Counted from the first letter of the stretch, positions 24,891 to 56,100 are shown. The stretch is 56,534 nt of DNA from Octopus bimaculoides (GCF_001194135.2 NC_069010.1:414388-470921), one strand, 5' to 3'. Made by a program: numbers and translations. The notes: a model not told the origin generated them from the letters alone.

Positions 24891-24953
<63 letters not shown>

Positions 24954-24989
24954 GTAATAATAAAAAGATTATGGAACAAAGATATATTT

Positions 24990-26370: not shown

Positions 26371-26442
26371 AATATCTGTAAATTAGGAAGCATCTGGAAA
26401 ATTCTTTGTTCAATACGCAAAATATAATTTCCGTTTAAATAT
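26371..26442 (-). CDS. LRR exon (72 nt, phase 2-2): YLNGNYILRIEQRIFQMLPNLQI
   Basis: ttattgttacag|...|gtaagttc, open, fits LxxNxIxxIxxxxFxxLxxLxxL. Confidence 0.9.
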
Positions 26443-27134
26443 CTGTAACAATAAAGAACCATGATAACAGCTGTTACGGATAATATGTGAAAATGAATTG
26501 AATGATGTGTGTCTGAAATAAAGCAAATGACGACAAGACAGAATATGATAAACAAGGAGAAAATGAAGAAGAATGAGGAGGAGAGGGGAAACATGAAGAG
26601 AAAAGGAAAAAGATAAAGAAGTAGGAGATATAGAAGAGAAGAAGAAGAGGAAGAGAGGTGAAGAAGAAGAAAAGAAGAAGATGATGATGATGATGATGAT
26701 GATGATTAATTTTGTCGAGTGACTACTGAAGAATAGTTTGATGAATCGCGATGACGATGAGGATGATAATGATGATGATGATGAAGTTGATGGTAGTGGT
26801 AGCGGTGGTGGATATGATGACAAGGATAATGATGGGAAAAAGAAAGGAAAGGAAACGAAGGAACAAAAAAATTGTGGAAGGAAGAAAGAAAACAAAGGAA
26901 TTTACTGAAGAAATTAATGACGTACAAATGTACATGAAGACGTAGAAATTTCGGTAAATCATTAGAAAATGGAATAGTGCAGTCACTCGATATGCATATG
27001 AAACTGCACAATATCTGACGAGTTCAGGCATGGAAAAATTAAACGAGATGATATAATTAATATACAGCATAACCCTTACAGTCATTCAAAGGTGTAAAAT
27101 ATGCTTTCTCAGTTGAATATTTGAATAAGTCCTA

Positions 27135-27544
27135 GGCGCCGGAGTGGCTGTGTGGTAAATAGCTTGCCTACCAACCGCATGGTTCCGGATTCAGTCCCAC
27201 TGCGTGGCACCATGGGCAAGTGTCTTCTGCTATAGCCTCGGGCCGACCAAAGCCTTCTGAGTGGATTTGGTAGACGGAAACTGAAATAAGCCCGTCGTAT
27301 ATATGTGTATATATATATATATATGTATGTATGTGTGTTTGTCCCTCCCCCACCATAACTTGACAACCGATGATGGTGTGTTTATGTCCCCGTAACTTAG
27401 CGGTTCGGCAAAAAAGGACTGATAGAATAAGTACTAGGCTTACAAAGAATAAGTCTTGGGGTCGAATTTCTCGACTAAAGGCGGTGCTCCAGCATGGCCG
27501 CAGTCAAATGACTGAAACAAGTAAAGGAGTAAAAGAGTAAAGAG
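27135..27544 (+). mobile_element. Full-length tRNA-derived SINE (octopod-type)
   Basis: Head ggcgccggagtggctgtgtgg...ggttccggattcagtccc (A/B-box-like), an internal TA/TG tract, and a tail gaaacaagtaaaggagtaaaagag. Confidence 0.8.
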
Positions 27545-27619
27545 TTAGATCATACTGTCATTTCACTGACACACGTTACATGTTATACATGTTATACATG
27601 TATATCCTTATCTTTTATT

Positions 27620-28000
27620 TCACTTATTAGATTCGGCCATACTAGAACAACACCTTGAAAGATATAGACTCAAGTGCTTAATTTTGAAAGTTAGTTACTC
27701 ATTCTATTGGGTATTTTGCCGAACCGTTACCTTACGGCGTGGGAAACACCAGTACCGTTTGTTAAGAGGCGGTTGAGGACAAAACAGATACAAAGACAAA
27801 CTTCTCTCTATATATATATGCATGCAGCATACGACAGACTCGTTTCAGTTTCCGTCTGGAAACTCCACTCAAAAGGAAGTGGCGGACCCGATGTAAACCA
27901 AAACTTCACGTGCACAGTGTGCCACATAGTGACATCGAGTCTTGGACCATGTGGTTTGTTACAACTTTCTTCCTACACATCCACCTGTGCCTGCATATGG
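27620..28000 (-). mobile_element. Old SINE copy of the same family, reverse orientation
   Basis: Reverse-complement similarity to 27135-27544 (tttcagtttccgtct, gccgaaccg). Confidence 0.6.
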
Positions 28001-28239
28001 ATATGCGTGTGTGTGTGTTTAAATGCGAGTGTATGTAATTATGTATGCGTGTTTATCCCAGAAACATTCTAAAATGTTTCTTCCTCGAGAAAAAGGAATT
28101 CCTCTTTCGAATCTGAGTCCCAAAGAATATATCATTCATAGATATTAAAATCTTATAATCATCTACGTGAAGTAAACCCCGATGAAGGTGTATCGCTTAC
28201 AGTTTCTCTTTATTGTAAACAAAAAAAAAATGAACTTAC

Positions 28240-28311
28240 AATCTCTTCAAATTAGTAAGATTTTGGAAGCTTCCACGTTCGATTTTATCGATCTTATTAT
28301 GGTCCAGACGT
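28240..28311 (-). CDS. LRR exon class A: RLDHNKIDKIERGSFQNLTNLKR
   Basis: ttttattaacag|72 nt|gtaagttc, open. Confidence 0.9.
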
Positions 28312-29188
28312 CTGTTAATAAAACATGAATAGATTTTAGAAACGTTTTCTGATAAATGCTTAAATTTGGAGTCGGAATATGAAATGAATATATGAGGGAT
28401 ATGAAAGAGACATGTGCGATGATGATAATTTGGCGTAGGACGAGAAGAAGTAGATGGTAAAAGAAGGAAAATAGAAGGTTGGTAGTAGGGAAGGCTGAGA
28501 AGGGGAGAGGTGGAGGGAGAGAACGAGAGGAAGAGGGATAGGATGGGAGGGCAAGAAAAGGAGAGAATGAACGGAGGACAAGAGAAAGTGAGGACGAGAA
28601 AGAGAAGGAGCAGGTGTAATAAAGCGGTGAGGCAGAATAGAAATAGAACGGAATAACTAAAGAAAAATACATGTGTTTATGTGCATGTGTGTTTATTTGT
28701 GTGTGTGTGTGTGTGTGTATCTAAACGTGACTATATGAGATTCTATATGTCTGTTTAGCCCAGAAAAATTCTGAATTGTTTGTTCCTCGAGAAAACCAAT
28801 TCGTTTTTGAAATGTGAGTTCGAAAGAATAGGTCTCGCATAAATATTAATAGAAGCTTATAATCTTCTACGTGAAGTAACTTTCCATGAAAGTATATCGC
28901 ACACGATTTCTCTTTGTGTGTGTATGCATGAGAGTAAGGTATTTCATTAGAGTTACAGAATATGTTTTAATAGCAGGATTTTCTGTTAGTCAATATGATT
29001 TCTTTTACAAAGATAGAGAAAAACACATGGACACGAACTTACACGCCACACACAGATACAAACATACATGTTTACATGAAATTATACTCCCATGCACAAA
29101 ACATTTATTTATTCATACAGAGATACGTACATTGCTACGCAACTTCATACGCTTACAAACGAAAATATAACGACAGAATATAAATTAG

Positions 29189-29236
<48 letters not shown>

Positions 29237-29308
29237 NNNNNNNNNNNNNNNNNNNNNNNNNNNNNNNNNNNNNNNNNNNNNNNNNNNNNNNNNNNNNNNN
29301 NNNNNNNN

Positions 29309-29369
<61 letters not shown>

Positions 29370-29441
29370 AGAGTAAGTAAAAGTAGACATGAAATTTCTA
29401 GTGATAAAATGTTCATAAAATATCAACAAAATTGAACTTAC

Positions 29442-29513
29442 AGTCTCTGTAAATTGGTAAAAGTTTGGAAGATTCCACGTTCGATTTTCTCGATCTTATT
29501 ATGATCCAAATGT
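29442..29513 (-). CDS. LRR exon class A: HLDHNKIEKIERGIFQTFTNLQR
   Basis: ttttatgtcacag|72 nt|gtaagttc, open. Confidence 0.9.
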
Positions 29514-30552
29514 CTGTGACATAAAACAAATTATAAAGGAAATAGAATAAAAGGGTTCTCTAATAAAACATTAAATTTGGTGCCTTAGAATTAGAGGAAA
29601 AATTAGGACTATGAAAGAGAGAAGTGTGATGATGATAAGGAGGTCAAGGGCGAGGAGGAGGCATAGTGGAGAAGGCGTAGGTGGAGGTGGTGGAAGAGGA
29701 AGTAGAGGAGGGTAAGTAAAAGTTTGAAAGGAGGGGAAGTAGAAGAAGTGAAGAGAAGACGAGGGGTGTAGAGGACAAGTGAAGGGGAGGAAAAGACGAG
29801 AGGAGGGGCAGTTAGAATAAAGAGAAATTGGGGTGTAGAAGTGAGGTGTTGAAGGAAAGTAAGTCGTAGAAAGTATAAATCTATAGACGTGCAAGTAGAA
29901 TGCGATGAAAGAAAAACGACGTATGAGAAATGGGAAAAGAAGATGAAAATATTTAGAAAGAGGAGAGGAAGGAGGAGATGATGAACATGAATAATGTAGA
30001 GGAAAATTGTGAAGAAGACGAAAGATGCAGGAATAAAAAGCATAGTAGAAGGACGATGAAGAAAAATAACAATAGAAATCAGAATGAGTAAAGAAGGAGA
30101 AGGAAATAAATATGAATATAAAGACTACAATCACACATGCACAAAAATACACATACACCCAAACAATTTCAATCGCTGGTGTAGATACACCCACACACAC
30201 CTTTACACACACACACCTTCATAAATATATTCATTCAAAGACAGTCAAATACATTCACTCAGAAATTAAGAAAGACAATATGAATTAGAGCAGAGTAAAG
30301 TAGAAAGAAAAGCAAGATGGGAACACATTAAGGATTGCAAATTATCGTTGGTCGATATTGCTGATACTATAATGATGAAGACGTCTGTGGCATGAATGAG
30401 AGGTGATAAGAAGTTGCATTTCAGATAAACATTATAGATTTTTAATATTTAGTCTTGAGAATTTAATTAGGGAAACGAAGAATGGTGACGACGGAGAAAA
30501 GAAAAAAGAATACGATGATAATTACGAAGAATGAGATACCGAAGCAGAATAT

Positions 30553-30612
<60 letters not shown>

Positions 30613-31369: not shown

Positions 31370-31400
<31 letters not shown>

Positions 31401-31715
31401 TACATACACACACTGAGTTATACATTTGTTGCTTAAAATGTTCGAAATATCAGCCAAGACATTCACCAAATATAGAATATTATAGTATATGTAGCACTGT
31501 ATTNNNNNNNNNNNNNNNNNNNNNNNNNNNNNNNNNNNNNNNNNNNNNNNNNNNNNNNNNNNNNNNNNNNNNNNNNNNNNNNNNNNNNNNNNNNNNNNNN
31601 NNNNNNNNNNNNNNNNNNNNNNNNNNNNNNNNNNNNNNNNNNNNNNNNNNNNNNNNNNNNNNNNNNNNNNNNNNNNNNNNNNNNNNNNNNNNNNNNNNNN
31701 NNNNNNNNNNNNNNN

Positions 31716-31782
<67 letters not shown>

Positions 31783-31799
31783 CTTATCTTTCTCTTATT

Positions 31800-32775: not shown

Positions 32776-32847
32776 AATCTCTGCAAATTGGCAATGTTTT
32801 CGAAGACTCCACGTTCGATTTTCTCGATCTTATTATGGTCCAAATTT
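32776..32847 (-). CDS. LRR exon class A: NLDHNKIEKIERGVFENIANLQR
   Basis: tttcatgtaacag|72 nt|gtaagttc, open. Confidence 0.9.
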
Positions 32848-33416: not shown

Positions 33417-34626
33417 TTATGGAATAAAGAAATTGTCATTTATTTAATTCGCTATTCTGTCTCCGTGTATAAATTCTTTAGATACTGCGGTATTTCATAT
33501 GTATATTAAGTGACTGGACATTTGTGATGATTTGCCAAAATTTCTACGTTTTCAGGTAATTTTTTGCGTTATTATTTTCTTTAGCAGCATTTTTCTTCCT
33601 TCCACTCTTTTATTCTTTCTTTCATTTCCTTTCCTTTCTGTTTTTATTGATCATCACCATCATCATTACCATCATCGATGTTGATTTATTATTCTAATCA
33701 TAATTTCCTCGTAATGAATTTTTATCTTGAGAATCGATATCTTCAATATCTATCTCCACCTCGTCCTCGTCCTCCTCTTCCTCCTCATCATCAATATCAT
33801 CATCATCACCACCACCAACATGACCACCACGACCAACATCATCATCATCAGAATCGTTAGATTATACATTGATATTAACATTATTATGATCATCATCAAC
33901 ATTCTCATCCTGTTTCACATCATCGTCGTCCTTAAGTTCATAATTATCATCATCATCATCATCATCATCCCCATGATCAATGTCGTCAACATCATTATTA
34001 TCGTAATCAACATCATCATAACATTATCATCGTCATCTTCATTATCATCGTCATCTTCCTTACATTCCTCTCACATTCATTATTTCTTCTTATTCACGAG
34101 TCAATTTTAATACTTTATCAGAAGTTATTTCTTTAGTTTTCTCCGTCTTAACTCATTTCTGTATTCCTTCACGTATTTTCCCGCCTCTGTTTTTTCTTTC
34201 ACGTCTTATTTCTTCTTCTTCTTCTTCTTCTTCTTCTTCTTCTTCTTCTTCTTCATTTTGTACTTCGCTTCTTTTTTCTTCCATCTACTTCTCCTGTGTC
34301 TTCCGCTTCAACTTCTTTTTCCTCCCCTTTTCTCTTCCTCCTCCTTCTTTTTCTTTTCTTCTTTCTATCCTTCTTCTTCTTATTCCTCACTTTCTTCTTC
34401 GTCTTCCTCTCTTTCTTAGTCTTCTTCATGGACACCATCATCTTTTTCTTCTTTTTCTGCTGCTCTGCTCCTGCTGCAGCCACCATTCCTGCTACTGCGA
34501 CTTCTCCTCTTCCACCCCATCGTTGTCTTCGTCGTCGTCATCCTCCTCCTCCTCCTCCTCCTCCTCCTGCTACTACTACTACTACTACTACTACTACTAT
34601 AACTACTACTACTACTGCTGCTACTG

Positions 34627-34688
<62 letters not shown>

Positions 34689-35490
34689 AATACTAAAACT
34701 GCTACTGCTACTGCTGCTGCTGAATTTACTACTACTACTAGACATTGTACTTTGTTATCTCATTCTTGTTAACTCTCATCTTTCTCCTTTTCCCGTCATC
34801 ATTCTTTTTGTTTCCTTATTTTATTCTAAATACTCAGGATTAATAATCTATAAAATCCATCTGAATTAGAATTGCTTATAAAAATTCTTTCATGCCACAG
34901 ATGTCTTCATCATTATAGTATCACCGATATCGTCCAAGTATGATTCGAAATACTTATTGCACTCACATCTTGCATTTCCTACTACTTTATTATTCTCTAA
35001 TTAATACTATCTCTCTCAAAGTTTGTGTAAATGCATTTGAATTTGTTTGTATGTCACTCTGTGGAGGTATATGCCTGAAGGAATGTATGGGCGTATCTAC
35101 GTCAGCGATTGATATCCTTGGCGAGATTTATGTGAGCATGTGCTGATGGGTGTATGTGTGATTGTACTATTTATATTCCAATTTATTTTCTTCCTCTCTT
35201 TTCGTCATTCTGATTTTCGTTGTTATTTTCCTCCTCTTCCTTTACTATATATATANNNNNNNNNNNNNNNNNNNNNNNNNNNNNNNNNNNNNNNNNNNNN
35301 NNNNNNNNNNNNNNNNNNNNNNNNNNNNNNNNNNNNNNNNNNNNNNNNNNNNNNNNNNNNNNNNNNNNNNNNNNNNNNNNNNNNNNNNNNNNTCTTGAAT
35401 CTATGTTCATCATCTTCGATTTTTCCACTTTATAAAAATTTTCAATTGCTTTTTCCATTTCTCATGAATCTTTTTTATTTCAATTGCATT
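33417..35490. repeat. Inverted copy of the class-A intron unit
   Basis: The plus strand switches to pyrimidine-rich. 33860-34020 is the reverse complement of 38030-38170, and 34840-35140 is the reverse complement of 30170-30450 and 37130-37390. Confidence 0.8.
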
Positions 35491-35500
35491 TTTATAGATC

Positions 35501-35540
<40 letters not shown>

Positions 35541-36048
35541 ATGGGAGGACAGAAGGAACGAAGAGAAAAGAAAGAAATTCGCTGAAGAATATAACAACGT
35601 AAAATGCACATGAAAACGTAGAAATATGGCTAAATCTTCACTGAATGGTATAGTCCAGTCACCCGATATGCATCTGAAACTGCGCAGTATCTGAAGAGCA
35701 TATGCACAGAGAATGAATTAAACGACATCCTTTTATTCCATAATACTAAAATTGTTTCTATATTTCATCATAGCCATAAATTAAAGATGAGATGATATAA
35801 TTTATATACGCCACACACACAGATCACACATACATGTTCACATAAACTTATACTCTTATGCACAAAACATTTATTTACTCATGCACAGACACATACACTC
35901 GTACACATCTTCATACACGCACTCACGGAAATATGACAGAATATAAATTAGAAAGGCAGAGAGTGAGTGGGAGAGAGACTAAGAAAGAGAAGACATTACA
36001 TTTCTAGTCATATTGTATTAATAAAATAAGAACAAAAATTGAACTTAC

Positions 36049-36120
36049 AGTCTCTGTAAATTGGTAAAATCTTGGAAGATACCATGTTCGATTTTCTCAA
36101 GCTTATTATGGTCCACATGT
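36049..36120 (-). CDS. LRR exon class A: HVDHNKLEKIEHGIFQDFTNLQR
   Basis: ttatacaacag|72 nt|gtaagttc, open. Confidence 0.88.
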
Positions 36121-38836
36121 CTGTTGTATAATAGAGATTTTGCAGGAAATACTATGGAAAAGCTTTCTGATAAATCATAAACTGTTGGAGTCATGAAATC
36201 AGATGAAAAAATATGGTTATGAAAGAGAAAAGCGTGATGATGATAATGAAGGGAGGACGGGTGGGACAGGTGCAGGAGTACGTAGAGGTGGGCAAGTAGG
36301 CGTGCGTGGGAGGACAAGATTATGAAAGGAGAAGGGGAATAAAAAGCGATGCACAATGAGAAATTGAGTGGAATGACGGGGATGGTAAAGGAAAATGAGT
36401 CATACATCGTGTAGGTCCATAGAAGTGCAAGTAGAAAACGATGAAACGAAAACAAGGAATGGGAAATGAGAAAATAAGTTGAAATATTTAAAAGGAGGAA
36501 AAAAACCGATGAGGATGAACATTAATAATGTAGAGCAATGCTGTGAAGAAAATGAAAGTTGCGGGAATAAAACACATAGCAGAAGGACGATGAGGAAAAT
36601 ATCAACGAATATCAGAATGAGGTAAAGAGAGAGAAGAAAATAAATATGAATACATTTGGAATCTTAAGATCAGATAAAAAGTTGATGGCTGTGAAAAAGG
36701 GTTCATAGAAGGAGGGAAAGTAAGACGGAAAGGGGGGACGAAAGAGAAAAGAAGGTGAAGACAAGATGAGATGGAATAAAGTGGCGATACACAATGGGAA
36801 ATTGAACGGAATAACGGAGGTAGTGAAAGAAAGTACGTGATAGAACGAAAGGATCTATAGAAGTACAATGAGAAATGGAAAAAGAAGCTGAAAAATTTAA
36901 AAAGACGGGTGGAATCAAATTATAATGAATATGAACAATGGAGATGAAAATTGTGAAGAAGTCGAAAGATTCAAGAATAGAATACATAGTAGAAAGACGA
37001 TGAGGAAATTAACAACGAAAATCTGATTGAGGAAAAGTGGGAGAAGATTATAAAAATCAAAATAGATAAAAAATAAAAACAGACATACAGATATCTGCAC
37101 ATACAAACATACAATTTTGCGTATCATATGAATCATTGATTTAGATACACCCATAGATAGTTTCTCACACATGCCTTCTCAGAGTTACATTCAAACAACT
37201 TCAAAATACATTCACAGAAAAATTGAGAGAGAAGATATGAATTAGAGAATAATAAAGGAGGAATAAATGCAAGATGTGAATACAATAAGCATTTCGAATT
37301 ACCATTAGATGATATTGCTGATACTATGCTGATGAAGGCGTCTGTAGCATGAAAGAGATTCGATAAGCAATTCTAAATCAGATAAATATTATAGGGAAAA
37401 AAAGAATGATGATGACGGAAAAAGAACAAAGAAAAATACGAAGACAATTACGAAGAATGAGATAATGAAGTAGAAAATGCAGTAGTAGTAGTAGCAGCAG
37501 CAACAGTAGAGTAAGAATAGAAAGAAGAAAAAGAAGATGATGAAGAAGAAATGATGAAGCTGAAGAAAGTAAAGAAAAGGAAAAGAAGTAAAAAGAAAAA
37601 GGTGGAGGACGAACCGAAGAAGAATGTAAAGGGGAAGAGTAAATGTGAAAGAGAAGAGTAAAAAGAAGAAGGAGAAGAAGGAGACGGGGGAGGAGGAGAA
37701 GGAGGTGGAGGAACAGAAGAAGAAGGTACAGAAGACGGTAAAGGAAAAGTAGAAGGAAAAAAAGAAAAAGTAGACGGAAAAGAAGAAAACTATATGGATA
37801 AGGAGGGGAAGAAGTAAAAGAAAATGAAATGTGAAAGAAAAAGAAGCTGAAAAAGATTAACGAATAGAGAAAGTAGTTAGGACAGAGACAACGTATTCGG
37901 CCATGTAGAAAGAAGTAAAGAAAATACTGATAAAATATTAAAATGGTCCCGAGAATGAGATGAAGAAAGGAATGTGATACGATAATTATGAAAATGGTGA
38001 TGATGATGATGATGAAAGTGATGTTAATGATGATGTCGAATATTATGATGAGGATGTTGGTGACATTGATCATGGGGATGATGATGATGATAACTAATAA
38101 CTTAAGGACAATGATGATGTGGAACAGAATGAGAATGTTGATGATCATGTGAATATCAATGAATAATCTGACGATTCTGATGATGATGTTGATAATAATT
38201 ATCGATGATGACGAGTATGGTTTCTAATGAATAATAGGTTGAATAAATTGCGTTAATGATGACGATGATGATGAATTTGATTATGATACAACAGAAAAAT
38301 TCTGAGGTGTTTCTTCCTTGAGAAAAACGAATAGCTTTTTGATATTTGAGTCCGAAAGAATAGGTCATCCATAAATATTAATAAAAATTTATAATCCCCT
38401 ATGGGAAGTAAATCTCGATGAAAGTATTTCGCTCACACTTTCGCTTTGTGTGAATATGCATGTAAGGTATTTCATTAGGGTTACAGAATGATATAAAAAC
38501 CATGTAAGACCATTTTTAAATAGTATAATTTTCTGTTAGTTAAAGTTTTTCTTACAAAGACACATAGAAACACACACGGATGCGAATGTACAAGCTACAC
38601 ACAGAAATATAAAGATGCATGTTTACATAAAATCATACTCTAATGCACAAAACATTTATTTAATCACACGGTGATCCATACGTTCGTACAAACTTCATAC
38701 AAACAACAGAAACGGAAATATAATGACCGAATATAAATTAGAGAGTCAGTGAGAAAGAACAAGAATAAGAAAGGGAAAACATTACGTTTGTAATTATTTT
38801 GCGTCAATAAAAATTATCAGCAAAAATTGAACTTAC

Positions 38837-38908
38837 AATCTCTTTAAATTGGTAAGATTTTGGAAGATACCAAGTTCGATTTTCTCCATCTTATTATGAT
38901 CGAAATGC
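38837..38908 (-). CDS. LRR exon class A: HFDHNKMEKIELGIFQNLTNLKR
   Basis: tttatataacag|72 nt|gtaagttc, open. Confidence 0.88.
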
Positions 38909-39994
38909 CTGTTATATAAACAGATCATAAACAACATGGCACAGAACAGTTTACTCATTCGACATTAAATTTAGAGCCTTAAAATTCGAGGACAAAATGA
39001 AGGCTATGAAAAAGAAGTGTTATGAAAATAATGAGAAGAGGTGGAGGAAGAGGTGGCGGAGGAGGTAGAAGGTGGGGAGAAGAGAAGTGGGAGTAGGAGC
39101 AGGAGGGCAAGAAATAGGGATTGAGAGTAAGGGAGGCGCAGGTGGAATAGTGAAAAACTGAGAGGAATAACGGAGGTTTTCAAGGAAAATAAAACATAGA
39201 TCGTATAGATCTATAGACGTGGAAGTAGAATACAATGTAACGAAAATGACGCGTGGCAAATGGAAAATGCAGTTGAAAAATTTCAAAAGAGTAGAGGAAA
39301 CAGATCATGAACATGAAAATATAGCGCAAAGTTGTGATGAAGACGAAAGATGGAGGAACAAAATACACAGCATAAGGACGACGAGAAAAGTAACGACAAA
39401 AATCAGAATGAGGAAAAGAGGGAGAAGATAATAAATATGAATATAAATATTATAGGTACGCATACACATATGTGAACATATACACAAAGAATTTGGACAT
39501 ACCTTCACAGACACACATTCAAATACACTGAAATGTATTCACACAAAAATTGAGAGAGAATATGAATCTGAGAAGAATAATGTAGGAAGAAAAGCAAGAC
39601 GTGAAAACAATAAGCATTCCGAATTATCCCTGGAAGATATTGATGATGCTATAATGATGAAGACGTCTGTGGCATAAACGAGTGTTGAGAAGGAATTCTA
39701 TTTCAGATACATATTTCAGATACATTCTATTTCAGATACATATTATAGCTTCTTAATATTGAGGCTTGAGAACTGAATTAGGGGTAGAAATAAAAAGAGT
39801 TTTGGGACTTTCAACTCGCGAATATTCTACATATAATTGTCCATGAGAGAAGCTAGGAGAAGGAAAGTTTAAGTCTATCAACCTTGAGAGATTGTCGTTG
39901 AGATTTATTTATTGACATAGGAAAACTTAGTTTCACTGAGAACTGGAGCGGTTTAAATTGAAAGGGGTGGTGAGATGGGATTAAAGGGAATGAA

Positions 39995-43826: not shown

Positions 43827-43898
43827 AGTTTTTGTAAACTGCGAAGACCCTCGAAGCTTCCTTTTTCAATGTGCGCAATATTGTTTTGTTGAAGATAT
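43827..43898 (-). CDS. LRR exon class B: YLQQNNIAHIEKGSFEGLRSLQK
   Basis: ttttctcctacag|72 nt|gtaagttc, open. Confidence 0.9.
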
Positions 43899-44352
43899 CT
43901 GTAGGAGAAAAGAAAGTGGGTAAGTGTTGATATCGAAAATATATGCAATAAGATATTAAATATTCTTTAAAATAGGAGAATGGATGAGAGGAAGGGTTGC
44001 AATAAATAAGGGAGAGGAGGAGAGAAAGAAGATGAAGAAAGAGAAAAAGAAGACGAAGAAGAAGAAAAAGCAGAAGAAATTGGGATGGAAGAGGAAAAAT
44101 AAGAGATGAAGCAGATAAATACGAAGAAGAAGAAGAAGATGGAGAAGGGAAAGAAGTTAAAATGGGCAAGAAGAATAAGAAAAGGAAACAGAAGAGAAGA
44201 AACAGAAGAAGTAGAAGGAGATCAGCGTACATATAGGGGCAGAATATGAGTAAGAGTGAGAGGAATCGAGAATTAAGGAGAAATAAGAGGCTATTAAATG
44301 TATAGAAATATTACATTCATGAAGTAGTATCAACAAAATTAAACGAACTTAC

Positions 44353-44424
44353 AAATCTTTTAAACTTGGAAGATCTCGGAAACTTCTTTTTTCTATATGC
44401 GAAATATTATTTTGCTGAAGATAT
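44353..44424 (-). CDS. LRR exon class B: YLQQNNISHIEKRSFRDLPSLKD
   Basis: ttttctcctatag|72 nt|gtaagttc, open. Confidence 0.9.
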
Positions 44425-46053
44425 CTATAGGAGAAAAGAAAGAGGGTATGTAATCATATACGAAATATTTGCAATGAGATATTTAAATAAGTATTTTATA
44501 AAACGGGGAGTAGATGAGAGGAGAGATTGTGATAAATAACTAGGAGAAGATGAAGAAGAATATGATGAAAAAGATGAAGTAGAAGTCGAAGAGGAAGGAG
44601 ATGTAAAAGAATAAAAATGAAGAATAAGTGAAAAAGATGAACATGAACATGAAGATGCAGAAGAAAAAGAAGAGGAAGAAAGAAAAGATGAAGTAGAAGT
44701 CCAAGAAGAGGAAGATGTAAAAGGAGAAGGAGATGAAGAATATGCAGAAGGAAAAGAAAAACGAGATGAACATGAAGATGCAGGAGAAAAAGAAGAGGAA
44801 GAATAAGAATAAGAAGAAGAAGTGGAAAAAAAGAAAAGCAGCAGCACAAAAAGAATTTCATGAGAAGGAAGGCAAAATAAGAGGAGGTAAAAATGATGAA
44901 GACGAAATAGAAGAGGAAGAAATAGAAATGAAGGACAACAGGAAGCACAAGAAAAGAAGACAAAGAAGAAACAGAAGATGAAGGACAAGAAGACGAAGAG
45001 AAAGAAGGTGAAGATGTAAACGAATTAAAAAGAAGAAATAAAAAGATAAATAAAACCAAAGACGAAGAGAGAAACAGAGTTATGAGAGGAGGAAGAGGAA
45101 GAGAGGAGGAAAAGTAGAAGAAGAAGAGAAAGAAGAAGGTGGGGCTATAATATGGAGAATAAGAAGTGGAAAAAGTAGACAAAGAAGAACACGAGAAATA
45201 AGCTGAAGAAGGAGAAGACGAAGAAGAAGAGGAAGCAGAAGCGGAAGAAAAAAAGATGAAGAGGAGGAAGTAAAGAAAAGAAGTGGTTGAAAAACAAAAG
45301 AAATTGCACGTGATATAAGCTGATGACGTTTACAAAGCGAAAGATATAGGCAACTATATTTATATAGTCCATTTGTATATCTATAGATTGTACCATATAA
45401 ATAAACTGAAGTGAATAATTAAGAAACTGGAGAAGAATAGAAGGATTTGGAGGAAGAGAAGATGGGAAAACAAAAGGAAAATAAAAATTCAAAACAGGAA
45501 TGATAAATGGAGGGGTAAAACATATATAATCAAATCTAAATACGCCGCCACTCACATAGATATGAATGTTTGCATATATATANNNNNNNNNNNNNNNNNN
45601 NNNNNNNNNNNNNNNNNNNNNNNNNNNNNNNNNNNNNNNNNNNNNNNNNNNNNNNNNNNNNNNNNNNNNNNNNNNNNNNNNNNNNNNNNNNNNNNNNNNN
45701 NNNNNNNNNNNNNNNNNNNNNNNNNNNNNNNNNNNNNNNNNNNNNNNNNNNNNNNNNNNNNNNNNNNNNNNNNNNNNNNNNNNNNNNNNNNNNNNNNNNN
45801 NNNNNNNNNNNNNNNNNNNNNNNNNNNNNNNNNNNNNNNNNNNNNNNNNNNNNNNNNNNNNNNNNNNNNNNNNNNNNNNNNNNNNNNNNNNNNNNNNNNN
45901 NNNNNNNNNNNNNNNNNNNNNNNNNNNNNNNNNNNNNNNNNNNNNNNNNNNNNNNNNNNNNNNNNNNNNNNNNNNNNNNNNNNNNNNNGAGGACATTAAA
46001 TGTATGCGAAAATTATTTTCATGAAGTAGTATTAAAAAATTAAACGAACTTAC

Positions 46054-46125
46054 AATTTCTCTAAGCTTGGTAGACCTCCAAAGATTCCTTTCTCAATATA
46101 CGAAATATTATTTTGCTGAAGATAT
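46054..46125 (-). CDS. LRR exon class B: YLQQNNISYIEKGIFGGLPSLEK
   Basis: ttttccgctatag|72 nt|gtaagttc, open. Confidence 0.9.
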
Positions 46126-47185
46126 CTATAGCGGAAAAAAAGTATTATAAATTTTGATATACAAATCATTTTCAATAAGATTTTAAATAAAGATTCTTTA
46201 AAAGGGGATAATGGATGACAGCAATGTTTGCGATAAATAAGGAAGAGGAAGAGGAGGAGAAGAAGAAGAAGAAGAAGAAGAAGAAGAAGAAGAAGAAGAA
46301 GAAGAAGAAGAAGAAGAAGAAGAAGAAAATAATATATAGATATAGGAGGCCAAGAAAAAGGTAAAGTTAAATAGGAGAAATGTGGAAGAAAAGTAGAAGA
46401 TGAAGACGATGAAGTAGAAAAAGAAGAGGTAAAAGAAGAAGAGGACGACAACAACAACAATAACAACAACCATAAGAAAAAGTAAGTGCACGTGCTGTAA
46501 GAGAGAAACGAATAGGTGGCTACTTATATATTCAACTTCTACATCTACAGATGGTATTATATCAGTGGTTCCGAAAGTTTCTCGAGCTGCTGCCCCCTTG
46601 ACAACCAGGCCACATTCCTCGTGCCCCCATCCCAACTAACCATCACAAACATAGACTTCTTTCCGAAACAAATTCAAAGCAGCCTTGTTTCATAAATATA
46701 ACTTAACCTAAAAAAATCTTGTTTTTAGATGAATCACCAGACGAATTATCAGGCCAATTTTTTCAAGAATCGCTACCCCATTATCACCCACTTTTCTTGA
46801 ACACCTTCTTGGAACATTCTACTGCCCCCAGGGGGAAATACCTCTCACTTTCGGAATAAATATATTAGATAAATATACGAAAGTGAATGAAGAAAATGGA
46901 GATGAAGAAATGAAGAAAGAAAAAAATGAAGATTGAAAAGAGGATGAGAAGACGGTAAAGAACAGGAGGAAGGCTAAGATTAAAGACGGGAATGAAAAAC
47001 GAAGGAGATGGTAAATCATATGATTTGAAAAATATAGTCAAATATAAACACGCCGCCACTCACATACATATGAGGGTACATATTACACTGTTATTGATAA
47101 GTTTTCATGAAGCATATATAAAATTCATGTTGTACGCACCCCATACACAATCAAAACAATATAACGTAAACATAGGATAGAATAT

Positions 47186-47566: not shown

Positions 47567-47677
47567 CTACAGGACATAATATAAGAGTGGAANNNNNNNN
47601 NNNNNNNNNNNNNNNNNNNNNNNNNNNNNNNNNNNNNNNNNNNNNNNNNNNNNNNNNNNNNNNNNNNNNNNNNNNNN

Positions 47678-47749
47678 NNNNNNNNNNNNNNNNNNNNNNN
47701 NNNNNNNNNNNNNNNNNNNNNNNNNNNNNNNNNNNNNNNNNNNNGATGT
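47678..47749 (-). CDS. Probable class B LRR exon, mostly hidden in an N-gap
   Basis: Only 5 nt are visible (minus strand ACATC), directly after the class-B acceptor ttttctcctatag. The lower coordinate assumes 72 nt. Confidence 0.55.
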
Positions 47750-48976
47750 CTATAGGAGAAAAGTGTATATATAGTATAATGTATATATGATAAATGTATA
47801 TATAGAAAATATTTTCAATAAGATATTAAATATTCTTTAAAATAGGATAATGGATGAGAGGATGGTTTACTATAAATAAAAAGGAACTGAAGATGATGAA
47901 GAAGAAGGATAAGATGAGGAAAAAGAGAAAGGAGAGGAAGGACAAGATGAATTTGGGATGTCAAGGGAAAAATAAGAGAAGCAGGTAAAGAATAAGGGGA
48001 AGGAGATGAAGGAGAGGAGCAGGAAGTAAAAGAAATGAAGACAGAGAAGAAGCAACGGAAGAGGAAGAACAAGAAAACAAAGAGGAAGAAAATGAAGAAG
48101 CAAAAGAATTTAAAAAGAAGAATTATACCAAGAAAAAGAGGCAAAACGAAGTGTAGAACGGTGGGAGGAGAAGGAAAAGAGAGGAAGAAGAGGAGGAGGA
48201 GAAAGAAGAAAAAGAAGAAAAAGAAGAGGAGGGTAACGATGAAGCAAGAGATGAACAATAAGAAGTGGAAGAAGAAAATTAAGAAGAAAAAGAAGTAAAA
48301 GCAGAAAAAGATGTAGATGCAAGAACAAAAAAGTAAAAGAAGAAATACGTGGAAGAAAAGTAGAAGGAAAAGAAAAAAAATGATGAAGAAGAAGAAGAAG
48401 AGAGGAAGACGAAAAAGAGTATAAGTACAACAAAAAGACCAATAAGTAGAAGAAATTGCAGGTGTTGTAAGCTGGTCACGTTTACAGAGAGAAACGAATA
48501 AGTGATTATATTTATATATTCTACATTTACATGTATAGGTTGTATTAGATCAGGCCACATTTCTAACACATTCCTAGATAAATAAACTAAAGTGAATAAT
48601 GAAATTGGAAATGAATAGAAAAATCTGGAGGAAAACGGTGAAGAACAAGAGGAAAAAGAAAATTCAAGACGGGAATGAAAAACGAAGGAGGGGTAAAACA
48701 TATGGATATGAATTATATAGTGAAATATGTATATGCCGCTACTCACATACACAGAAATATGCATATTACACTTCTGTTTATAAATTTTTATACCAACATA
48801 TATAAAATCCCTGTTTTACGCATCTTCATACACAATAGAAGCATTGTAACGTACATATAGGGGCAGAATATGAGTAAGAGTGAGAGGAATCGAAAATTAA
48901 GAAGAAATAAGAGGCTATTAAATGTATAGAAATATTACATTCATGAAGTAGTATCAACAAAATTAAACGAACTTAC

Positions 48977-49048
48977 AATTTTTTTAAACTTGGAAGATCT
49001 CGGAAGCTTCTATTTTCTATATGCGAAATATTATTTTGCTGAAGATAT
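48977..49048 (-). CDS. LRR exon class B: YLQQNNISHIENRSFRDLPSLKK
   Basis: ttttctcctgtag|72 nt|gtaagttc, open. Confidence 0.9.
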
Positions 49049-49626
49049 CTACAGGAGAAAAGAAAGAGGGAAAGTGTTGATATATGAATTATTTGCAATA
49101 AGATATTAAATAAAGATTCTTTAAAATATGAGAATGGATGAGAGGAGGGATTGCGATAAATAAAGACAGGAAGAAGATACAAAAGATTATGAAGAAGAAA
49201 CAGATGAAGTATTAGTAGAAGGTGAAGAAGATGTTGATGATGAATTTAAAGTAAAAGTTCAGCAAGAAAAATGTGCAAGACAAACAGAAGTAGAAAGCAA
49301 ATATGATGAAGAAGAGAGTAGAAGAAAGAGGAAAAGAAAAACAGCAACAACAAGTCAAAGAAATTGCACGTGGTGTAAGGTGGTGATGTTTACAGATGGA
49401 AACCAGTAGGTGATTATATTTATATATTCCACCTCTACATCTATAGGTTGTATTAGTTAAAGAAGCTAAATTGAATGAAGAATTTGGATATGAATATAAA
49501 AATTTAGAGGAAGAGACACTAAAAACAATGGGAAAAAGTTCATGACAGGAATAAAAAACGAAATAAGTAGTAAAATATATGGATGCAAATTATATAGTCA
49601 AATATATATAAGCTGCCACTCACATA

Positions 49627-50895: not shown

Positions 50896-51121
50896 TACAT
50901 ATGAATATATATATTGCTCTTCTATTGATAAGTTTTCAGGAAAATATATATATAATCCTTATTGTAGGCATTCTCATACGCCATCACAGCAATATAGCGT
51001 AAATGTAGAGAAAGAATATAAGTAAGGGTGAAACCAATAAAGTAAAGAGAAAGGATAGGACATTACATGTATAGAAATATTACATTCATCAAGTAGAGTC
51101 AGCAAAATTAAACAAACTTAC

Positions 51122-51193
51122 AATTCCTCCAAACTTGGTAGACCTTGGAAAATTCCTCTTTCAATATGGTAAATATTATTTTGCTGAAGATAT
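51122..51193 (-). CDS. LRR exon class B: YLQQNNIYHIERGIFQGLPSLEE
   Basis: ttttctcctatag|72 nt|gtaagttt, open. Confidence 0.9.
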
Positions 51194-52087
51194 CTATAGG
51201 AGAAAAGAAAGAAGATAAGTTTTGATATAGAATATATTTGTCATGCGATATTAAATGAAGATTCTTTAAAATAGAATATTGCATGAGAAATGATTGCGAT
51301 AAATATGGAGGAGGAGAAGAAGAAGAAGAAGAAGAAGAAGAAGAAGAATTTGGTGTGAAAGAGGGGAAATAATGGAGGAAACTGGTAAAGCTGATGTAGT
51401 TGAAGAAGTAGAAGATGAAGAATAGGCAGAAGAAAAGGAAGGACAAGAAGACAAAAAGGAAAGACAGAGAAGAAGAAACAGAAGACAGAAGAGAAGAAAA
51501 AGAAAAGAACGAAGATGAAGAAGCAAAACAATTAAAAATAAGAAATAAAAAGAAGAATAAATTCAAGAAGTGACAAAAGGTGACGCAGAGCGGTGGGAGG
51601 AGGAGCAGGCAGTGAGGAAGAAAAAGAAGAATAATAAGAAGGATAAAAAGAAGAGGAAGGGAAAGAAGAAAAAGAAGAAGATGACGCAAGAGATGATCAA
51701 TAAGAAGTAGAAGAAGATAAAGAAGAAGAAAAAGAGGAAGAAGAAGAAGAAGATGAAGAAGAAGATTAAGCGAAAGAAAGGAAAGAGAGGAAACAAGAAA
51801 ACAAGGAACACTATGTAAAAGAAGTCAAAGAGAAAGATCAGCAACAATAGCAACAACAACAACAACGAGAAAAAGTACAAGGACAAGAACACCAAGAACA
51901 AGAAGAACACAGCGACAAGCACGATAAGAACAACAGCAAGCATCATTTCAAAAGAATAAGAATGAAGATACAAAGAAATACAAAAAGAAAAAGAAAAACA
52001 CACGGAGAACAAAAACAGGAGGAAGAAGAAAAGAAAGAAGAAGAAGGAGAAGAAAATGAAGGAGGAGAAGAAGAAGAAGAAGAAGAA

Positions 52088-52133
<46 letters not shown>

Positions 52134-52491
52134 GAGGAGGAGGAGGGGGATGAGGAGAAGGAGAGGAAGGAGGAAGATAAGAAGAAGAAGATGAAGAAGA
52201 AGAAGAAGAAGAAGAAGAAGAAGAAGAAGAAGAAGAAGAAGAAGAAGAAGAAGAATAGAAGAAGGAGAATAGAAGAAGGAGAATAGAAGAAGAATAGAAG
52301 AAGGAATTGAAAAAGCACACGAATGAATAAAAAGAAAAAAAGTAGAAATAGAGAATTTAGAAAAAGACGAAGAAATACAAGAAGGAAGGAGGTAGAAGAA
52401 GCGGAGGACGAGAGAAGAAGTGTATGAGTGGGAGGAGGAAAGAAGAAGGGGCATGAGTGGTATAAGTAATAACAAAATTACGCGAGCTTAC

Positions 52492-52563
52492 AATTCCTTT
52501 AAACTTGAAAGTCCCAGGAAGCTTCCTCTTTCAATATGGAAAATATCATTTTGATAAAGATAT
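52492..52563 (-). CDS. LRR exon class B-like: YLYQNDIFHIERGSFLGLSSLKE
   Basis: ttttacccctatag|72 nt|gtaagctc, open. Confidence 0.88.
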
Positions 52564-52717
52564 CTATAGGGGTAAAAAAAAGGATAAGGGTTTACATTGA
52601 AAATATTTGCAATAAGATATCAATAAAAGATTTTTAAAATAGGAGATTCTTTAAATGGAGGAGAAGAAGGATTGTGATAAATAAGGAGGAAGAGGAGGAG
52701 GAGGAGGAGGAGGAGAA

Positions 52718-53098
52718 GACAGTCGTAATTGAGGAAGAAAATAAACTATGCTGGATCATAGATATAGCATGCCCAACTGACTACAAGGTATGCGATGAGG
52801 AAGAAAGAAATGTCGAGAGATATGACGGGTTAGCTTGGGAAATTAAGCAGTTGTGGTCGATGAAAAAGGTAGCAGTAGTACCAATAATTGCTGGAGCCAT
52901 GGGAACAGTGAGCAAAAATCTCGAGAAGTACGCGGAAGAAATAGGGGCTGCAATAAAAGTGGAGTACTTGTAGAAAACAGCACTGCTTGGAACCGTTTGA
53001 ATACTCCGGAAGATGCTCGAAAAATAGATGTTACCTTAGTTCACTGGTAGTGAAATGCTGGCACCGTAGTACATTTCCAGCGTTAGAAGCTGTGCAAT
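52718..53098 (+). mobile_element. R4/Dong-like family B 3' fragment with AAT tail
   Basis: VVIEEENKLCWIIDIACP...YDGLAWEIKQLWS, colinear with 24495-24880. Confidence 0.8.
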
Positions 53099-53177
53099 AA
53101 TAATAATAATAACAACAACAACAACAACAATAATAATAATGATGATGATGATGATAATGATGATGATGATAATGATA

Positions 53178-53998
53178 ATAATAAATACAAATACAAACAA
53201 GAAATTATACTACCTAATAAAGAAGAAGAAGAAGAAGAAGAAGAAGAAGAAGAAGAAGAAGAAGAAGAAGAAGAAGAAGAAGAAGAAGAAGAAGAAGAAG
53301 AAGAAGAAACAAAACCTATAAAACAAATGAAATCCAAACTAAAACTAGAACAGTAACGGACCATGATAAAGCGATGGCAAGAAAAGCCCCTACATGGTAA
53401 ATACTGGGGCTAAACTAAATGCAAAAGAAATAGACAGAGAAAAATCCCAGCAATGGCTGAGAAGCTCAGGACTCAAAGCAGAGACTGAAGGATTTTTATT
53501 TGCTGCACAAGAAATTACCAAAAATCATATAATGTAAAGAAACATAACAAGTAACTGCAGAATATGTGGCGATGCACAAGAAACAATAAATCATATTATC
53601 TTTGGCTGCCCAGACCTGGCTAAGAAGGAATATATTCACAGACAGGACAGAGCTGGGACCTATATACACTGGAAGCTATGCCAACACTATGGAATAACAG
53701 CAGAAAAAGATGGTATAAACACACGCCAGAAAAGGTCACAGAAACAATTCCAATCATTGTAGGTGCCTTAGGTATAATAAAAAAATATTCAGACAAATAC
53801 ATAACAAAACACCAGGACTTACAAATATATATAACATACAGAACATTGCACTACTGGGTACTGCACACATTCTACGCAAAACACTTTCAATACAGTAAAC
53901 ATAAGAGCACCACAGCAAACCACAGCACATACCCAAGGCATACAGAGCTGCGCTCGGTAGTGAAGTGAAAGCACGTTATAAAAATAAAACTACTGAAT
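53178..53998 (+). mobile_element. R4/Dong-like family A fragment, internally deleted, with an expanded (GAA)n
   Basis: Colinear with 21765-22627. Confidence 0.8.
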
Positions 53999-54010
53999 AA
54001 TAATATTAGC

Positions 54011-54101
<91 letters not shown>

Positions 54102-54107
54102 GTAAAA

Positions 54108-54377
54108 GACCTGGAAATAGCAGTAACTCAAATGTGGAGTCTAAAAACAGAAACAATTCGTATCATAGTAGGCGCATTAGGTATGATAAAAATATTCAGA
54201 CAAATACATAACAAAAATACCAGGACTTACAAATATATATAACATACAGAAAATTGCACTACTGGGCACTGCACACATCCTACACTTTCAATATAGTAAC
54301 CATAAGAGCATCACAGCAAACCACATTACATACACAAAGCACACAAAGCTGCGCTCGGTAGTGAAGTGAAAGCACGT

Positions 54378-54380
<3 letters not shown>
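54108..54380 (+). mobile_element. R4/Dong-like family A 3' end
   Basis: Colinear with 45-330 and has an AAT tail. Confidence 0.75.
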
Positions 54381-54432
<52 letters not shown>

Positions 54433-55837
54433 TAATACTGTAATGAAAACACTGCTCTGCCACGATGCTGCTTTGCTATAATACTAACAGTACAACGCCA
54501 AATATATTTAGTTAAACATTTATTCTTCCTTTTTTCATTTTTCTCTTTTTTGTTTATCTTCTCCATATATTTCTATCTTTGCTACTGTAATGAAAAAACT
54601 CCTTTGCCATGAGGCGGATGCGAACCCACCGTCTCCTCCCCGTATTCAAATTGCGAGGTAATTCTTTTTTTATCTTTTGCTTTCAGTCGGAACGACGGTG
54701 ACTAAGCTGGTAACTCTGCAGAACTTGCTCTGTGAGGAGGGCATATGATTCTTGCTATTTTGACACCCAACAGGAAGAAAAACAAGACCTGTATAAAGGC
54801 TAATGAACTCTTACGAGGCAGTGGCCACCAAAATAGCATATACCTAAGAAGCAGAAGCAATCATAACACTTGAGCACTCCTACTAGGAGATGAAAACTTC
54901 AAAAATTAAACCAGGATTATAGGAATCTTATATTCGAGGGTGGAGATCCTGTCAGTATTGGTGTCACGGGAAAAGTACTGGTGTCTGTGCAACCTAATAT
55001 TCACTAAATCATCATGTGTGCTGAAATATCAAATAAAGATAGATATCAGAACGGTGTGAATGAGGCTGGAACATCTTATAAAAGTGTCTCGCCCGACGGA
55101 TGCCCCACTGGTAAGCTGCGTGGGCCCAGTCGGCATCAAACAACTGCTAACAGAAGGTGAATAAAAGAAATGAATGTGGCTGTAATGGAGTGCTAATTTC
55201 TGGGTAATCCGAGAAATGAATGGCGTAATAATATTAATAATAATACGAAGAAGAAGAACGAGAAAAATAAGAGAAAAGTAGAAGGGAAAGAAGAAAAAAA
55301 AGGAAGACGTAGGAGAAGATGGAGTAGAAGACGAAGAGATAAAGTAGACGACAATGAAGTGCAGATGAAGTGAAAGAAAAAGAAGAAAACCACAAGAGGG
55401 GAAGAAAATAAAAAGGAGAATTATAAGATGGCAATTACAAAGAATGAAATAGTTGTGAGAGAATATAAGTAGAAAATGGAGTAGAGGAGAGAAGAAGCAA
55501 CTTGAGAATATATCAAATATTTATAAATATATCTTCAGTGAAAGAGTAACTGGGAAAGTGTTATAAATTTCAAGTGCTGGAAGCTGGTACATTTTACAAC
55601 GAGAAAGAAAGATGTAACTTATAAGTATCTATATTTTTCACTTCTCCATCTTCATGTTACTGCATTAGATAAATAACCTGAATTGAATGAAGAAGTCGGA
55701 GATTAAGAGAAGACGAATAGAAATGAATAGAAGATGGAAAAGAACAAGAAGTTTAAAAGAAGACGAAATATGCATATAAAAGATATATTCACATGTACAT
55801 GAAAATACATACATTTCTATAAATAAGTTTTGATGCA

Positions 55838-55890
<53 letters not shown>

Positions 55891-56028
55891 ATCTGTACTC
55901 GTCATCACAAACAAACAGATATAATACCAATCACGGGACAATATAATTCAGAGTGATAAAAAATAGAGAGGGAAAGAGAAACGAGGTACATTTGTATTAT
56001 TGTAGCAACAAAAAGGAAAAAAACTTAC

Positions 56029-56100
56029 AATATATGTAGCCTAGAAAGACCTTGGAAGCTTGCTTCTCCAATTATCGAAATGACATTTCTGTGAATATAT
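56029..56100 (-). CDS. LRR exon (divergent): YIHRNVISIIGEASFQGLSRLHI
   Basis: tactgctacag|72 nt|gtaagttt, open. It is the most 5' exon visible in the window. Confidence 0.85.

Follow-up and report, generated by a model that had tools for sequence, protein, structure and literature searches.

The question raised by this stretch of Octopus bimaculoides DNA (GCF_001194135.2 NC_069010.1:414388-470921; 56,534 nt, hereafter the window) is whether the array of near-interchangeable leucine-rich repeat (LRR) exons between positions 26371 and 56100 is a device for generating receptor diversity, as an earlier note on the sequence had proposed, or the product of exon duplication within one ordinary gene. 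The window is eukaryotic genomic DNA, AT-rich (35% GC), with many microsatellites and nine gaps of N. The array is probably the minus-strand LRR portion of a single octopod-restricted receptor gene, built by duplication, with most exons included in the transcript and some of them skipped. The frame-neutrality of its exons is an ordinary legacy of LRR exon duplication, and we found no evidence of a diversity generator.

Repeat analysis of the window identified units of ~110 nt recurring at kilobase spacing. When aligned, these units displayed a conserved core with the plus-strand borders CTTAC and CTATAG; on the minus strand it reads as an AG acceptor, an exon and a GTAAG donor. Searching with an nhmmer profile of the aligned repeats, we obtained 13 strong matches from 26358 to 56111 together with weaker ones. 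A mechanical scan of both strands for an AG, a 72 nt open frame in phase 2 with an LRR pattern and then a GT returned 13 exons in 26371–56100, a further one at 25723–25652 and no others, in agreement with the nhmmer-guided extraction. All 13 exons of the array are complete, lie on the minus strand, measure exactly 72 nt and have an AG acceptor and a GTAAG donor; coordinates 26371 and 56100 are both exon ends. The construction of one LRR per 72 nt exon with phase-2 introns on both sides was found in 14/14 complete exons. Their concatenated translation was a perfect LRR series of 14 complete 24-residue repeats, each showing the LxxLxLxxNxL pattern and the conserved Phe, and matched Pfam LRR_8 at E = 2.4e-99, far beyond chance. 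A strict LxxLxLxxNxL scan of the six-frame translations of the window gave nothing useful because the phase-2 introns split the motif, and the plus strand contained no large non-repetitive open reading frame (ORF) overlapping the array.

The first base of the 13 exons was A in 12 and G in one (38908), and the last bases were TT in 10 and CT in three. All 78 order-preserving joins among them yielded Leu (TTA, CTA, TTG or CTG), as the earlier note had predicted from the visible exon ends, and its statement that almost all donors are gtaagt was likewise borne out (12 of 13, the other being gtaagc). The junction codon encodes position 4 of LxxLxLxxNxL, a conserved Leu. Joining any of the 13 exons to exon 25723 also yielded Leu, and a direct join of any LRR exon to the LRRCT exon described below gave Phe, Leu or Ile. 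If every copy descended from one symmetric exon, retention of the frame and of this Leu would be an automatic by-product of duplication rather than a purpose-built device.

The history of the array is visible in its sister exons. Class B comprises six complete exons and one cut by a gap (52563, 51193, 49048, the gap-cut 47749, 46125, 44424 and 43898), with the motif YLQQNNIxHIE and exon identities of 74–94%; class A comprises five exons (38908, 36120, 32847, 29513 and 28311), with the motif xLDHNKIEKIE and identities of 81–89%. Exons 49048 and 44424, which are 94% identical, form the youngest pair in the array, and the outer exons 56100 and 26442 showed a weak mutual resemblance. Unit-to-unit homology reached 0.2–1.2 kb around the exons at 66–87% identity. 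Class-averaged pairwise identity was 79–84% in the exons, 63–77% in the nearest ~150 nt of intron and at background farther out, and these values do not support the earlier description of the flanks as near-identical within each class. A conserved element of ~30 nt (plus strand AATGGATGAGAGGAGGGATTGCGATAAATAA), flanked by (GAA)n/(TTC)n microsatellites, was observed ~100–130 nt upstream of every class-B exon.

The exon blocks would have arisen by tandem duplication of units consisting of one exon plus intron, roughly 0.5–3.3 kb in size, and the sequence points clearly to an array built by unequal exchange. The longest exact tract common to units, microsatellites excluded, was 76 nt here versus 150–224 nt in a paralogue from Octopus sinensis (L002, considered below), and recurrent unequal crossover is thus less likely here than in that paralogue. 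This makes the change in copy number by unequal crossover that the earlier note suggested less likely at this locus. Four decayed LRR pseudo-exons, one per class-A unit, have a common stop at codon 14, a common loss of the donor and a retained acceptor. Because these defects are common to the copies, the duplication unit appears to have already held a dead exon when it was multiplied. For the live exons, pooled Nei-Gojobori ratios of nonsynonymous to synonymous substitution (dN/dS) between sister exons were 0.24 in class B and 0.41 in class A, values that are indicative only since sister-exon pairs are not independent. These ratios suggest purifying selection, with the live exons maintained as coding sequence, and such selection would make them expressed coding exons.

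The gene to which the array belongs was identified from the exons that follow it on the minus strand. The LRRCT cap exon encodes ...MMCGCHLP...GKC...YSQC and aligns to the LRRCT of all members of the family described below. Two further exons encode a 12-cysteine module that starts with LHCQTC and ends with CCVGNLCN. The cysteine framework of the Ly6/uPAR (LU) domain (LxCxxC at the start, CCxxxLCN at the end) is present in this module, and its 12 cysteines are invariant across the family. The best PDB match to the family profile was human LYPD1 (6zss_A), over the full domain and with all cysteines in register (E = 0.15). In an hhalign comparison of the module with CD59 the C-terminal motif alone matched, and phmmer of the module against PDB returned noise only. 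A Ly6/uPAR three-finger domain is the likeliest identity of this module.

A query of LRRCT plus LU retrieved 11 proteins, all from O. bimaculoides, O. sinensis and Octopus vulgaris, with 48–70% identity (E = 7.6e-70 to 1.5e-26). These 11 relatives map exon for exon onto the window in tblastn, none of them being identical to it, and RefSeq names of relatives in the three species include 'G-protein coupled receptor 126-like' and 'adhesion GPCR G6-like' (GPCR, G-protein-coupled receptor). An exhaustive phmmer search of 1.84 billion representatives returned 35 clusters only. Source names for ten of the 35, the longer and the more distant clusters, were mostly octopods (Octopus species, Argonauta hians), with distant family matches from a whelk and a scallop among these named clusters. 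The LRR-LRRCT-LU family appears to be restricted to octopods. Its long members contain LRR_8, GPS and 7tm_2, one of them with an additional Death domain, and contigs of ~4 kb from sequencing-run assemblies hold an ORF of 1155 amino acids (aa) with the whole family architecture. This architecture matches 'group 3', an octopus-specific adhesion-GPCR expansion described by Ritschard et al. 2019 (PMC6408891), a paper that also gives the octopod-specific expansion as expressed in axial nerve cord, suckers and skin.

The ectodomain would therefore follow the order LRRNT, LRR array, LRRCT and Ly6/uPAR-like three-finger domain, the full-length relatives being adhesion GPCRs with GAIN/GPS and a secretin-type seven-transmembrane (7TM) region. 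No LRRNT-like match was found in the window, which extends 434 nt upstream of exon 56100, and the LRRNT and signal exons must lie past its end. Family models with complete N-termini contain about 4 to 15 LRRs; with at least 15 LRR exons, this copy stands at the top of the family range. A tblastn search for the WTNSF/SEA-like downstream part gave nothing credible anywhere in the window.

Several further observations were made around these exons. Were the donor that follows the second LU exon left unused, the frame would continue through 12464–12406 (minus strand) as GKCYLLPNITPPGLSQINS followed by a stop, and the RefSeq models of two relatives, P0124 and P0127, end in a similar read-through (GKRCLF... 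and GKCCLF...). The closest relative found was the locus L001 (O. bimaculoides CM046630.1:796126-846331; P0121, 67% protein identity), which is colinear with 12–26 kb of the window at 74–77% nucleotide identity including introns, with the introns themselves at about 76%, and has a tandem second LU-exon region. L001 was ruled out as a comparator for exon count by 14 kb of N, with three LRR exons within reach. The segment at ~24206–24958 is 88% identical to part of L001. Three plus-strand ORFs in the 7.8 kb intron before the LRRCT exon (21471–21938, 23379–23792 and 24339–24815) and a minus-strand ORF at ~5600–6500, downstream of the gene part, were retrotransposon-like by eye. Feature coordinates are collected in Table 1.

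Table 1. Exons, pseudo-exons and conserved elements located in the window; LRR and cap exons are in minus-strand order.
Feature	Sequence	Coordinates	Strand	Remarks
LRR exon 1 of visible array	YIHRNVISIIGEASFQGLSRLHI	56029..56100	-	72 nt, phase 2-2, A...TT, gtaagt
Class-B LRR exon	YLYQNDIFHIERGSFLGLSSLKE	52492..52563	-	72 nt, A...TT, donor gtaagc
Class-B LRR exon	YLQQNNIYHIERGIFQGLPSLEE	51122..51193	-	72 nt, A...TT
Class-B LRR exon	YLQQNNISHIENRSFRDLPSLKK	48977..49048	-	72 nt, A...TT
Class-B LRR exon, gap-cut	first 5 nt ACATC	47745..47749	-	acceptor ttttctcctatag and class-B upstream flank
Class-B LRR exon	YLQQNNISYIEKGIFGGLPSLEK	46054..46125	-	72 nt, A...TT
Class-B LRR exon	YLQQNNISHIEKRSFRDLPSLKD	44353..44424	-	72 nt, A...TT
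Class-B LRR exon	YLQQNNIAHIEKGSFEGLRSLQK	43827..43898	-	72 nt, A...CT
Class-A LRR exon	HFDHNKMEKIELGIFQNLTNLKR	38837..38908	-	72 nt, G...TT, sole G start; weak polypyrimidine tract
Class-A LRR exon	HVDHNKLEKIEHGIFQDFTNLQR	36049..36120	-	72 nt, A...CT
Class-A LRR exon	NLDHNKIEKIERGVFENIANLQR	32776..32847	-	72 nt, A...TT
Class-A LRR exon	HLDHNKIEKIERGIFQTFTNLQR	29442..29513	-	72 nt, A...CT
Class-A LRR exon	RLDHNKIDKIERGSFQNLTNLKR	28240..28311	-	72 nt, A...TT
LRR exon	YLNGNYILRIEQRIFQMLPNLQI	26371..26442	-	72 nt, A...TT; flanks similar to those of exon 56100
Last LRR exon	NLSNNRIQKYEDGTFLFLSSIAE	25652..25723	-	72 nt, A...AT; outside 26371-56100; 15th LRR exon; join to LRRCT gives ATT, Ile
LRRCT cap exon	DLRNNNDMMCGCHLPAFAKHIKKEYRRILVVKGKCQAGSGNVKHILKYSQCQ	17673..17830	-	158 nt, acceptor ttacag, donor gttagt
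First exon of LU-like domain	YSLFQRNLHCQTCSGTMCKDSEVTRCPGPK	14504..14595	-	92 nt
Second exon of LU-like domain	PVCRF...CVGCCVGNLCNENEFIG	12465..12648	-	184 nt, donor gtaagt
Decayed LRR pseudo-exon in class-A unit		39595..39666	-	acceptor kept, stop at codon 14, donor lost
Decayed LRR pseudo-exon, sister copy		37341-37270	-	same stop and donor loss
Decayed LRR pseudo-exon, sister copy		34901-34972	+	inverted; same stop and donor loss
Decayed LRR pseudo-exon, sister copy		30384-30313	-	same stop and donor loss
Class-B upstream element		43979-44010, 44509-44540, 46210-46241, 47849-47880, 49133-49164, 51276-51307, 52654-52685		single orientation

To judge how the exons might be used, the array was compared with the paralogous locus L002 (O. 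sinensis contig VCDQ01004985.1), which is gap-free and has 11 intact 72 nt phase-2 LRR exons and one of 73 nt. RefSeq lists 13 isoform models for L002, XP_036355612-623 and XP_029656609, with lengths of 409, 385, 361 and 337 aa, that is, in steps of one 24-residue cassette. Decomposition of these models gave subsets of the cassettes in genomic order, and eight of the 13 were clean whole-exon skips. Each model holds five to eight cassettes. The three 3'-most cassettes (f, g and h) are in 13/13 models and d and e in nearly all, so that the variation is mostly 5'. A second, nearly identical O. sinensis 'gene' has the same isoform pattern. Two intact 72 nt phase-2 LRR exons of L002 (28668–28739 and 31667–31738), both downstream of the last used cassette and upstream of the LRRCT exon, are in 0/13 models, and a decayed copy of the 'IEKYEDG' penultimate exon was seen at ~35728.

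Within the window, class-B acceptors were strong, with polypyrimidine tracts of 78–94%, whereas class-A acceptors were weak (56–67% pyrimidine, with purines beside the AG), which is typical of skippable exons. If skipping occurs at this locus, class A is the likelier target. Exon skipping is plausible here on this analysis, and the likeliest usage would be that most exons are retained and some whole cassettes skipped, as in the models of the paralogue. Such skipping would alter how long and how curved the LRR horseshoe is, and hence the spacing of its class-B and class-A binding faces and of the membrane-proximal LU domain, and would create no new binding specificities. The earlier idea that skipping gives solenoids of varied length is in keeping with the retained frame and Leu (78/78 joins) and with the whole-cassette models of the paralogue, but a large repertoire is unsupported.

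A number of points weigh against this reading of a skipping-prone octopod adhesion GPCR. For the cysteine module, the LU statistics are weak (E = 0.15 for the LYPD1 match), no Pfam match was returned at E ≤ 1, and an AlphaFold model of LRRCT plus the LU module was unusable (predicted local distance difference test, pLDDT, 39). For the receptor class, a tblastn search for GAIN/GPS and 7TM exons in positions 1–12400 of the window found none; these exons may lie outside the window, or this copy may be without them, and its adhesion-GPCR status would follow from its relatives. An LRR-only query of the protein collection returned generic LRR proteins at no more than 45% identity and no octopus protein, which, together with the lack of an identical relative, indicates that the locus is unannotated in that collection. 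The array also contains five N gaps within 30 kb. For skipping, the evidence consists of annotation models of a paralogue, and the L002 isoforms are computational RefSeq models over near-identical cassettes (exact tracts of 150–224 nt). Five of the 13 have a hybrid first cassette that was traced to the 73 nt exon with its A8 run. This exon lies at 11132–11204 of L002, and its run reflects a homopolymer error in long reads or else a genuine frameshift. Because the L002 cassettes are near-identical, read mapping is ambiguous and some of the models may be artefacts.

These last points are what would be expected of a constitutive gene, in which all the LRR exons, 15 or more, enter every transcript, their interchangeability is unused and the isoforms of the paralogue are artefacts of short-read mapping. 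The uniformly strong donors (GTAAG throughout, gtaagt in 12/13), the pyrimidine-rich tracts of the class-B acceptors and the purifying selection on every sister exon also fit such a gene. It does not readily account for the eight clean whole-exon skips in genomic order or for the weak class-A acceptors, and in-frame skipping of 72 nt LRR exons is documented elsewhere (PMC9927937, PMC11378527). Constitutive splicing of the whole array is accordingly rather unlikely in our judgement, and inclusion of most exons with some skipping is preferred.

The gaps also bear on whether the locus is intact. None of the five touches a complete exon, and frame continuity across them is therefore not an issue; with one exon cut by a gap, exon number and order are minimum estimates and are uncertain between contigs. 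The gap at 47593–47744 truncates the seventh class-B exon after its start at 47749–47745, above which ~130 nt of class-B upstream flank is present (47750–47900). On its low-coordinate side is a GC-richer stretch (CCATAACCACTGGGCCATTGCGCC) unrelated to class-B downstream flanks, and the true gap is therefore probably larger than estimated, or an insertion is present. The gap at 29237–29308 lies within a (GA)n tract, and both of its sides are colinear with the paralogous unit around 35805–36249. The intronic gap at 45583–45988 starts 66 nt downstream of the donor of exon 46125–46054 and, by comparison with the unit of exon 43898, probably stands for ~150 nt of intron. The gaps at 31504–31715 and 35256–35392 are intronic too. 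Abutting the latter is a segment of ~730 nt (34523–35252) inverted relative to its paralogues in other class-A units, for which a genuine inversion or a local misassembly may be responsible.

A pseudogenized duplicate or a short-read scaffolding artefact would produce features of this kind, namely five gaps in 30 kb with a gap-truncated exon, an inverted segment beside a gap and four dead pseudo-exons, and would be compatible with the lack of an annotated protein matching the exons and of a downstream GPS/7TM exon in the window. Against this, open frames and canonical splice sites are present in every one of the 14 complete LRR exons, in the LRRCT exon and in both LU exons, no family cysteine is missing, the sister exons differ by 6–26% and are thus distinct copies rather than assembly duplicates, and dN/dS is well below 1. 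A decaying or misassembled locus is very improbable on this evidence.

At the other extreme, the exons could serve a repertoire in which regulated combinatorial splicing yields up to 2^13 or more ectodomains for recognition or self-identity, similar to Dscam or the variable lymphocyte receptors (VLRs). Every exon subset is frame-neutral and keeps the structural Leu, 13 isoforms are modelled for the paralogue, family models whose N-termini are complete have between about 4 and 15 LRRs, and the octopod-specific expansion is reported to be expressed in axial nerve cord, suckers and skin (PMC6408891). The composition of the exons is at odds with this proposal. When the repeats are numbered with the junction Leu as position 4 of LxxLxLxxNxL, positions 5, 7, 8 and 10 of the strand face the solvent. 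The concave residues are Y, Q, Q and N in class B, apart from one exon that departs from this at positions 7 and 10, and H/N/R, D, H and K in class A. Concave positions have one to three residue types (mean 1.4–1.8) versus 1.9–2.6 at convex positions; positions 5 and 8 are invariant in class B, as are 3, 7, 8 and 10 in class A, and differences between sister exons fall mostly at convex or loop positions. With so nearly invariant a concave face, dropping or swapping sister exons alters the length of the horseshoe and not its surface chemistry.

The signals expected of specialized mechanisms were similarly not found. All cassettes have a canonical AG acceptor and GTAAG donor and are colinear in one transcription unit, and no evidence of somatic rearrangement was seen among these normally spliced exons. 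Limited searches for a docking site, made with the class-B upstream element as the one candidate, returned 2 and 18 matches and 0 reverse-complement copies. In the paralogue the variation is mostly 5', since every model has f, g and h and nearly every one has d and e, and the models vary the number of cassettes rather than choosing one per cluster. Together with dN/dS values below 1 (0.24 and 0.41), these results speak against the VLR- or Dscam-like diversification envisaged in the earlier note. A combinatorial repertoire is improbable for this array, and we retain the reading of a duplication-built gene with mostly included exons.

The analysis supplies a model, exon by exon, of one LRR-rich and hitherto unannotated member of an octopod-specific adhesion-GPCR expansion and exposes an exon hidden by a gap. 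It also explains the fragmentation of the family by gene predictors, in which relatives were annotated as 'Slit-like', 'LRRC4-like' and 'GPR126-like' pieces. The family unites an LRR horseshoe, a three-finger domain and an adhesion-GPCR core, and its exon design lets evolution, and possibly splicing, adjust horseshoe length by single repeats. That octopod LRR-LRRCT-LU adhesion GPCRs use combinatorial cassette skipping to produce many horseshoe lengths in the arm nervous system, suckers and skin is a doubtful prospect. If it were true and widespread, cassette skipping would diversify the cell surface in parallel with the expanded protocadherins, and the family would be a second diversified surface-receptor family beside them in the octopus peripheral nervous system. 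No description of such a system was found in the literature, nor any publication that treats the splicing of LRR cassettes in adhesion GPCRs of cephalopods.

Comparison with known systems places the array among earlier exon designs. VLR diversity arises when donor cassettes that are not spliced, and whose concave residues are hypervariable, are assembled somatically in a manner resembling gene conversion, and Dscam1 uses mutually exclusive exon choice through docking/selector RNA pairing. The likeness to both is limited to the concept of combinable modular cassettes and, for VLRs, an LRR solenoid ending in an LRRCT. Unlike VLRs, the octopus exons have no hypervariable concave residues, and they do not form an incomplete germline gene with somatically assembled cassettes lacking splice sites; unlike Dscam1, they showed no docking complementarity for the one element searched, and the paralogue models showed no choice of one exon per cluster.

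Closer in exon structure are the gonadotropin/LGR receptor genes (LHCGR, FSHR and LGR4-6), which have single-LRR exons of ~72 nt in phase 2, so that loss of an exon is in frame, and place an LRR ectodomain before a 7TM region. Little et al. are said to have reported in 2002 that Slit genes have the same one-LRR-per-exon construction. The LGRs are rhodopsin-type receptors and Slit is secreted, each differing in this from the receptor class considered here, and their exons are old and individually distinct, whereas the octopus array consists of blocks of recently duplicated sisters with homologous introns. All introns of the gonadotropin receptor genes are in phase 2 (Koo 1991, as cited in PMC11378527), and skipping of LGR4 exon 6 deletes exactly 72 nt (PMC9927937).

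Brown-algal ROCO genes resemble the array in having tandemly duplicated phase-2 exons of exactly 72 bp with one LRR each (PMC11378527; Zambounis et al. 2012; Teng et al. 2024). In these genes, tandem exon duplication, shuffling and alternative splicing give different LRR combinations, and their authors likewise draw a comparison with Dscam and adaptive immunity (PMC11378527), so that the combinatorial idea of the earlier note is not new. ROCO proteins are cytoplasmic GTPases with four concave-face sites under positive selection (PMC11378527), whereas the octopus protein is an extracellular, cysteine-capped LRR protein whose concave face is near-invariant within each class (dN/dS 0.24–0.41). 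In Tetrahymena, arrays of 90 bp exons with an extreme phase-2 bias and a common junction codon are attributed to clonal exon expansion and unequal crossing over (2019, PMC6564038). The exact exon length, phase bias and common junction codon are similar to those described here, but the ciliate arrays occur in thousands of genes and without an LRRCT, LU or GPCR context.

The nearest system is the octopus 'group 3' expansion itself, with LRRCT and LU exons 48–70% identical to those of the window and, in L002, the same layout of one LRR per 72 nt exon. This copy differs in that no GPS/7TM exon was found in the window, in its at least 15 LRR exons and in the much greater divergence of its sister exons compared with L002. 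The available portion of Ritschard et al. 2019 (PMC6408891) discusses neither the cassette arrangement of the exons nor the LU-like domain. The frame-neutral 72 nt phase-2 layout is a long-known design, multiplied here by tandem duplication.

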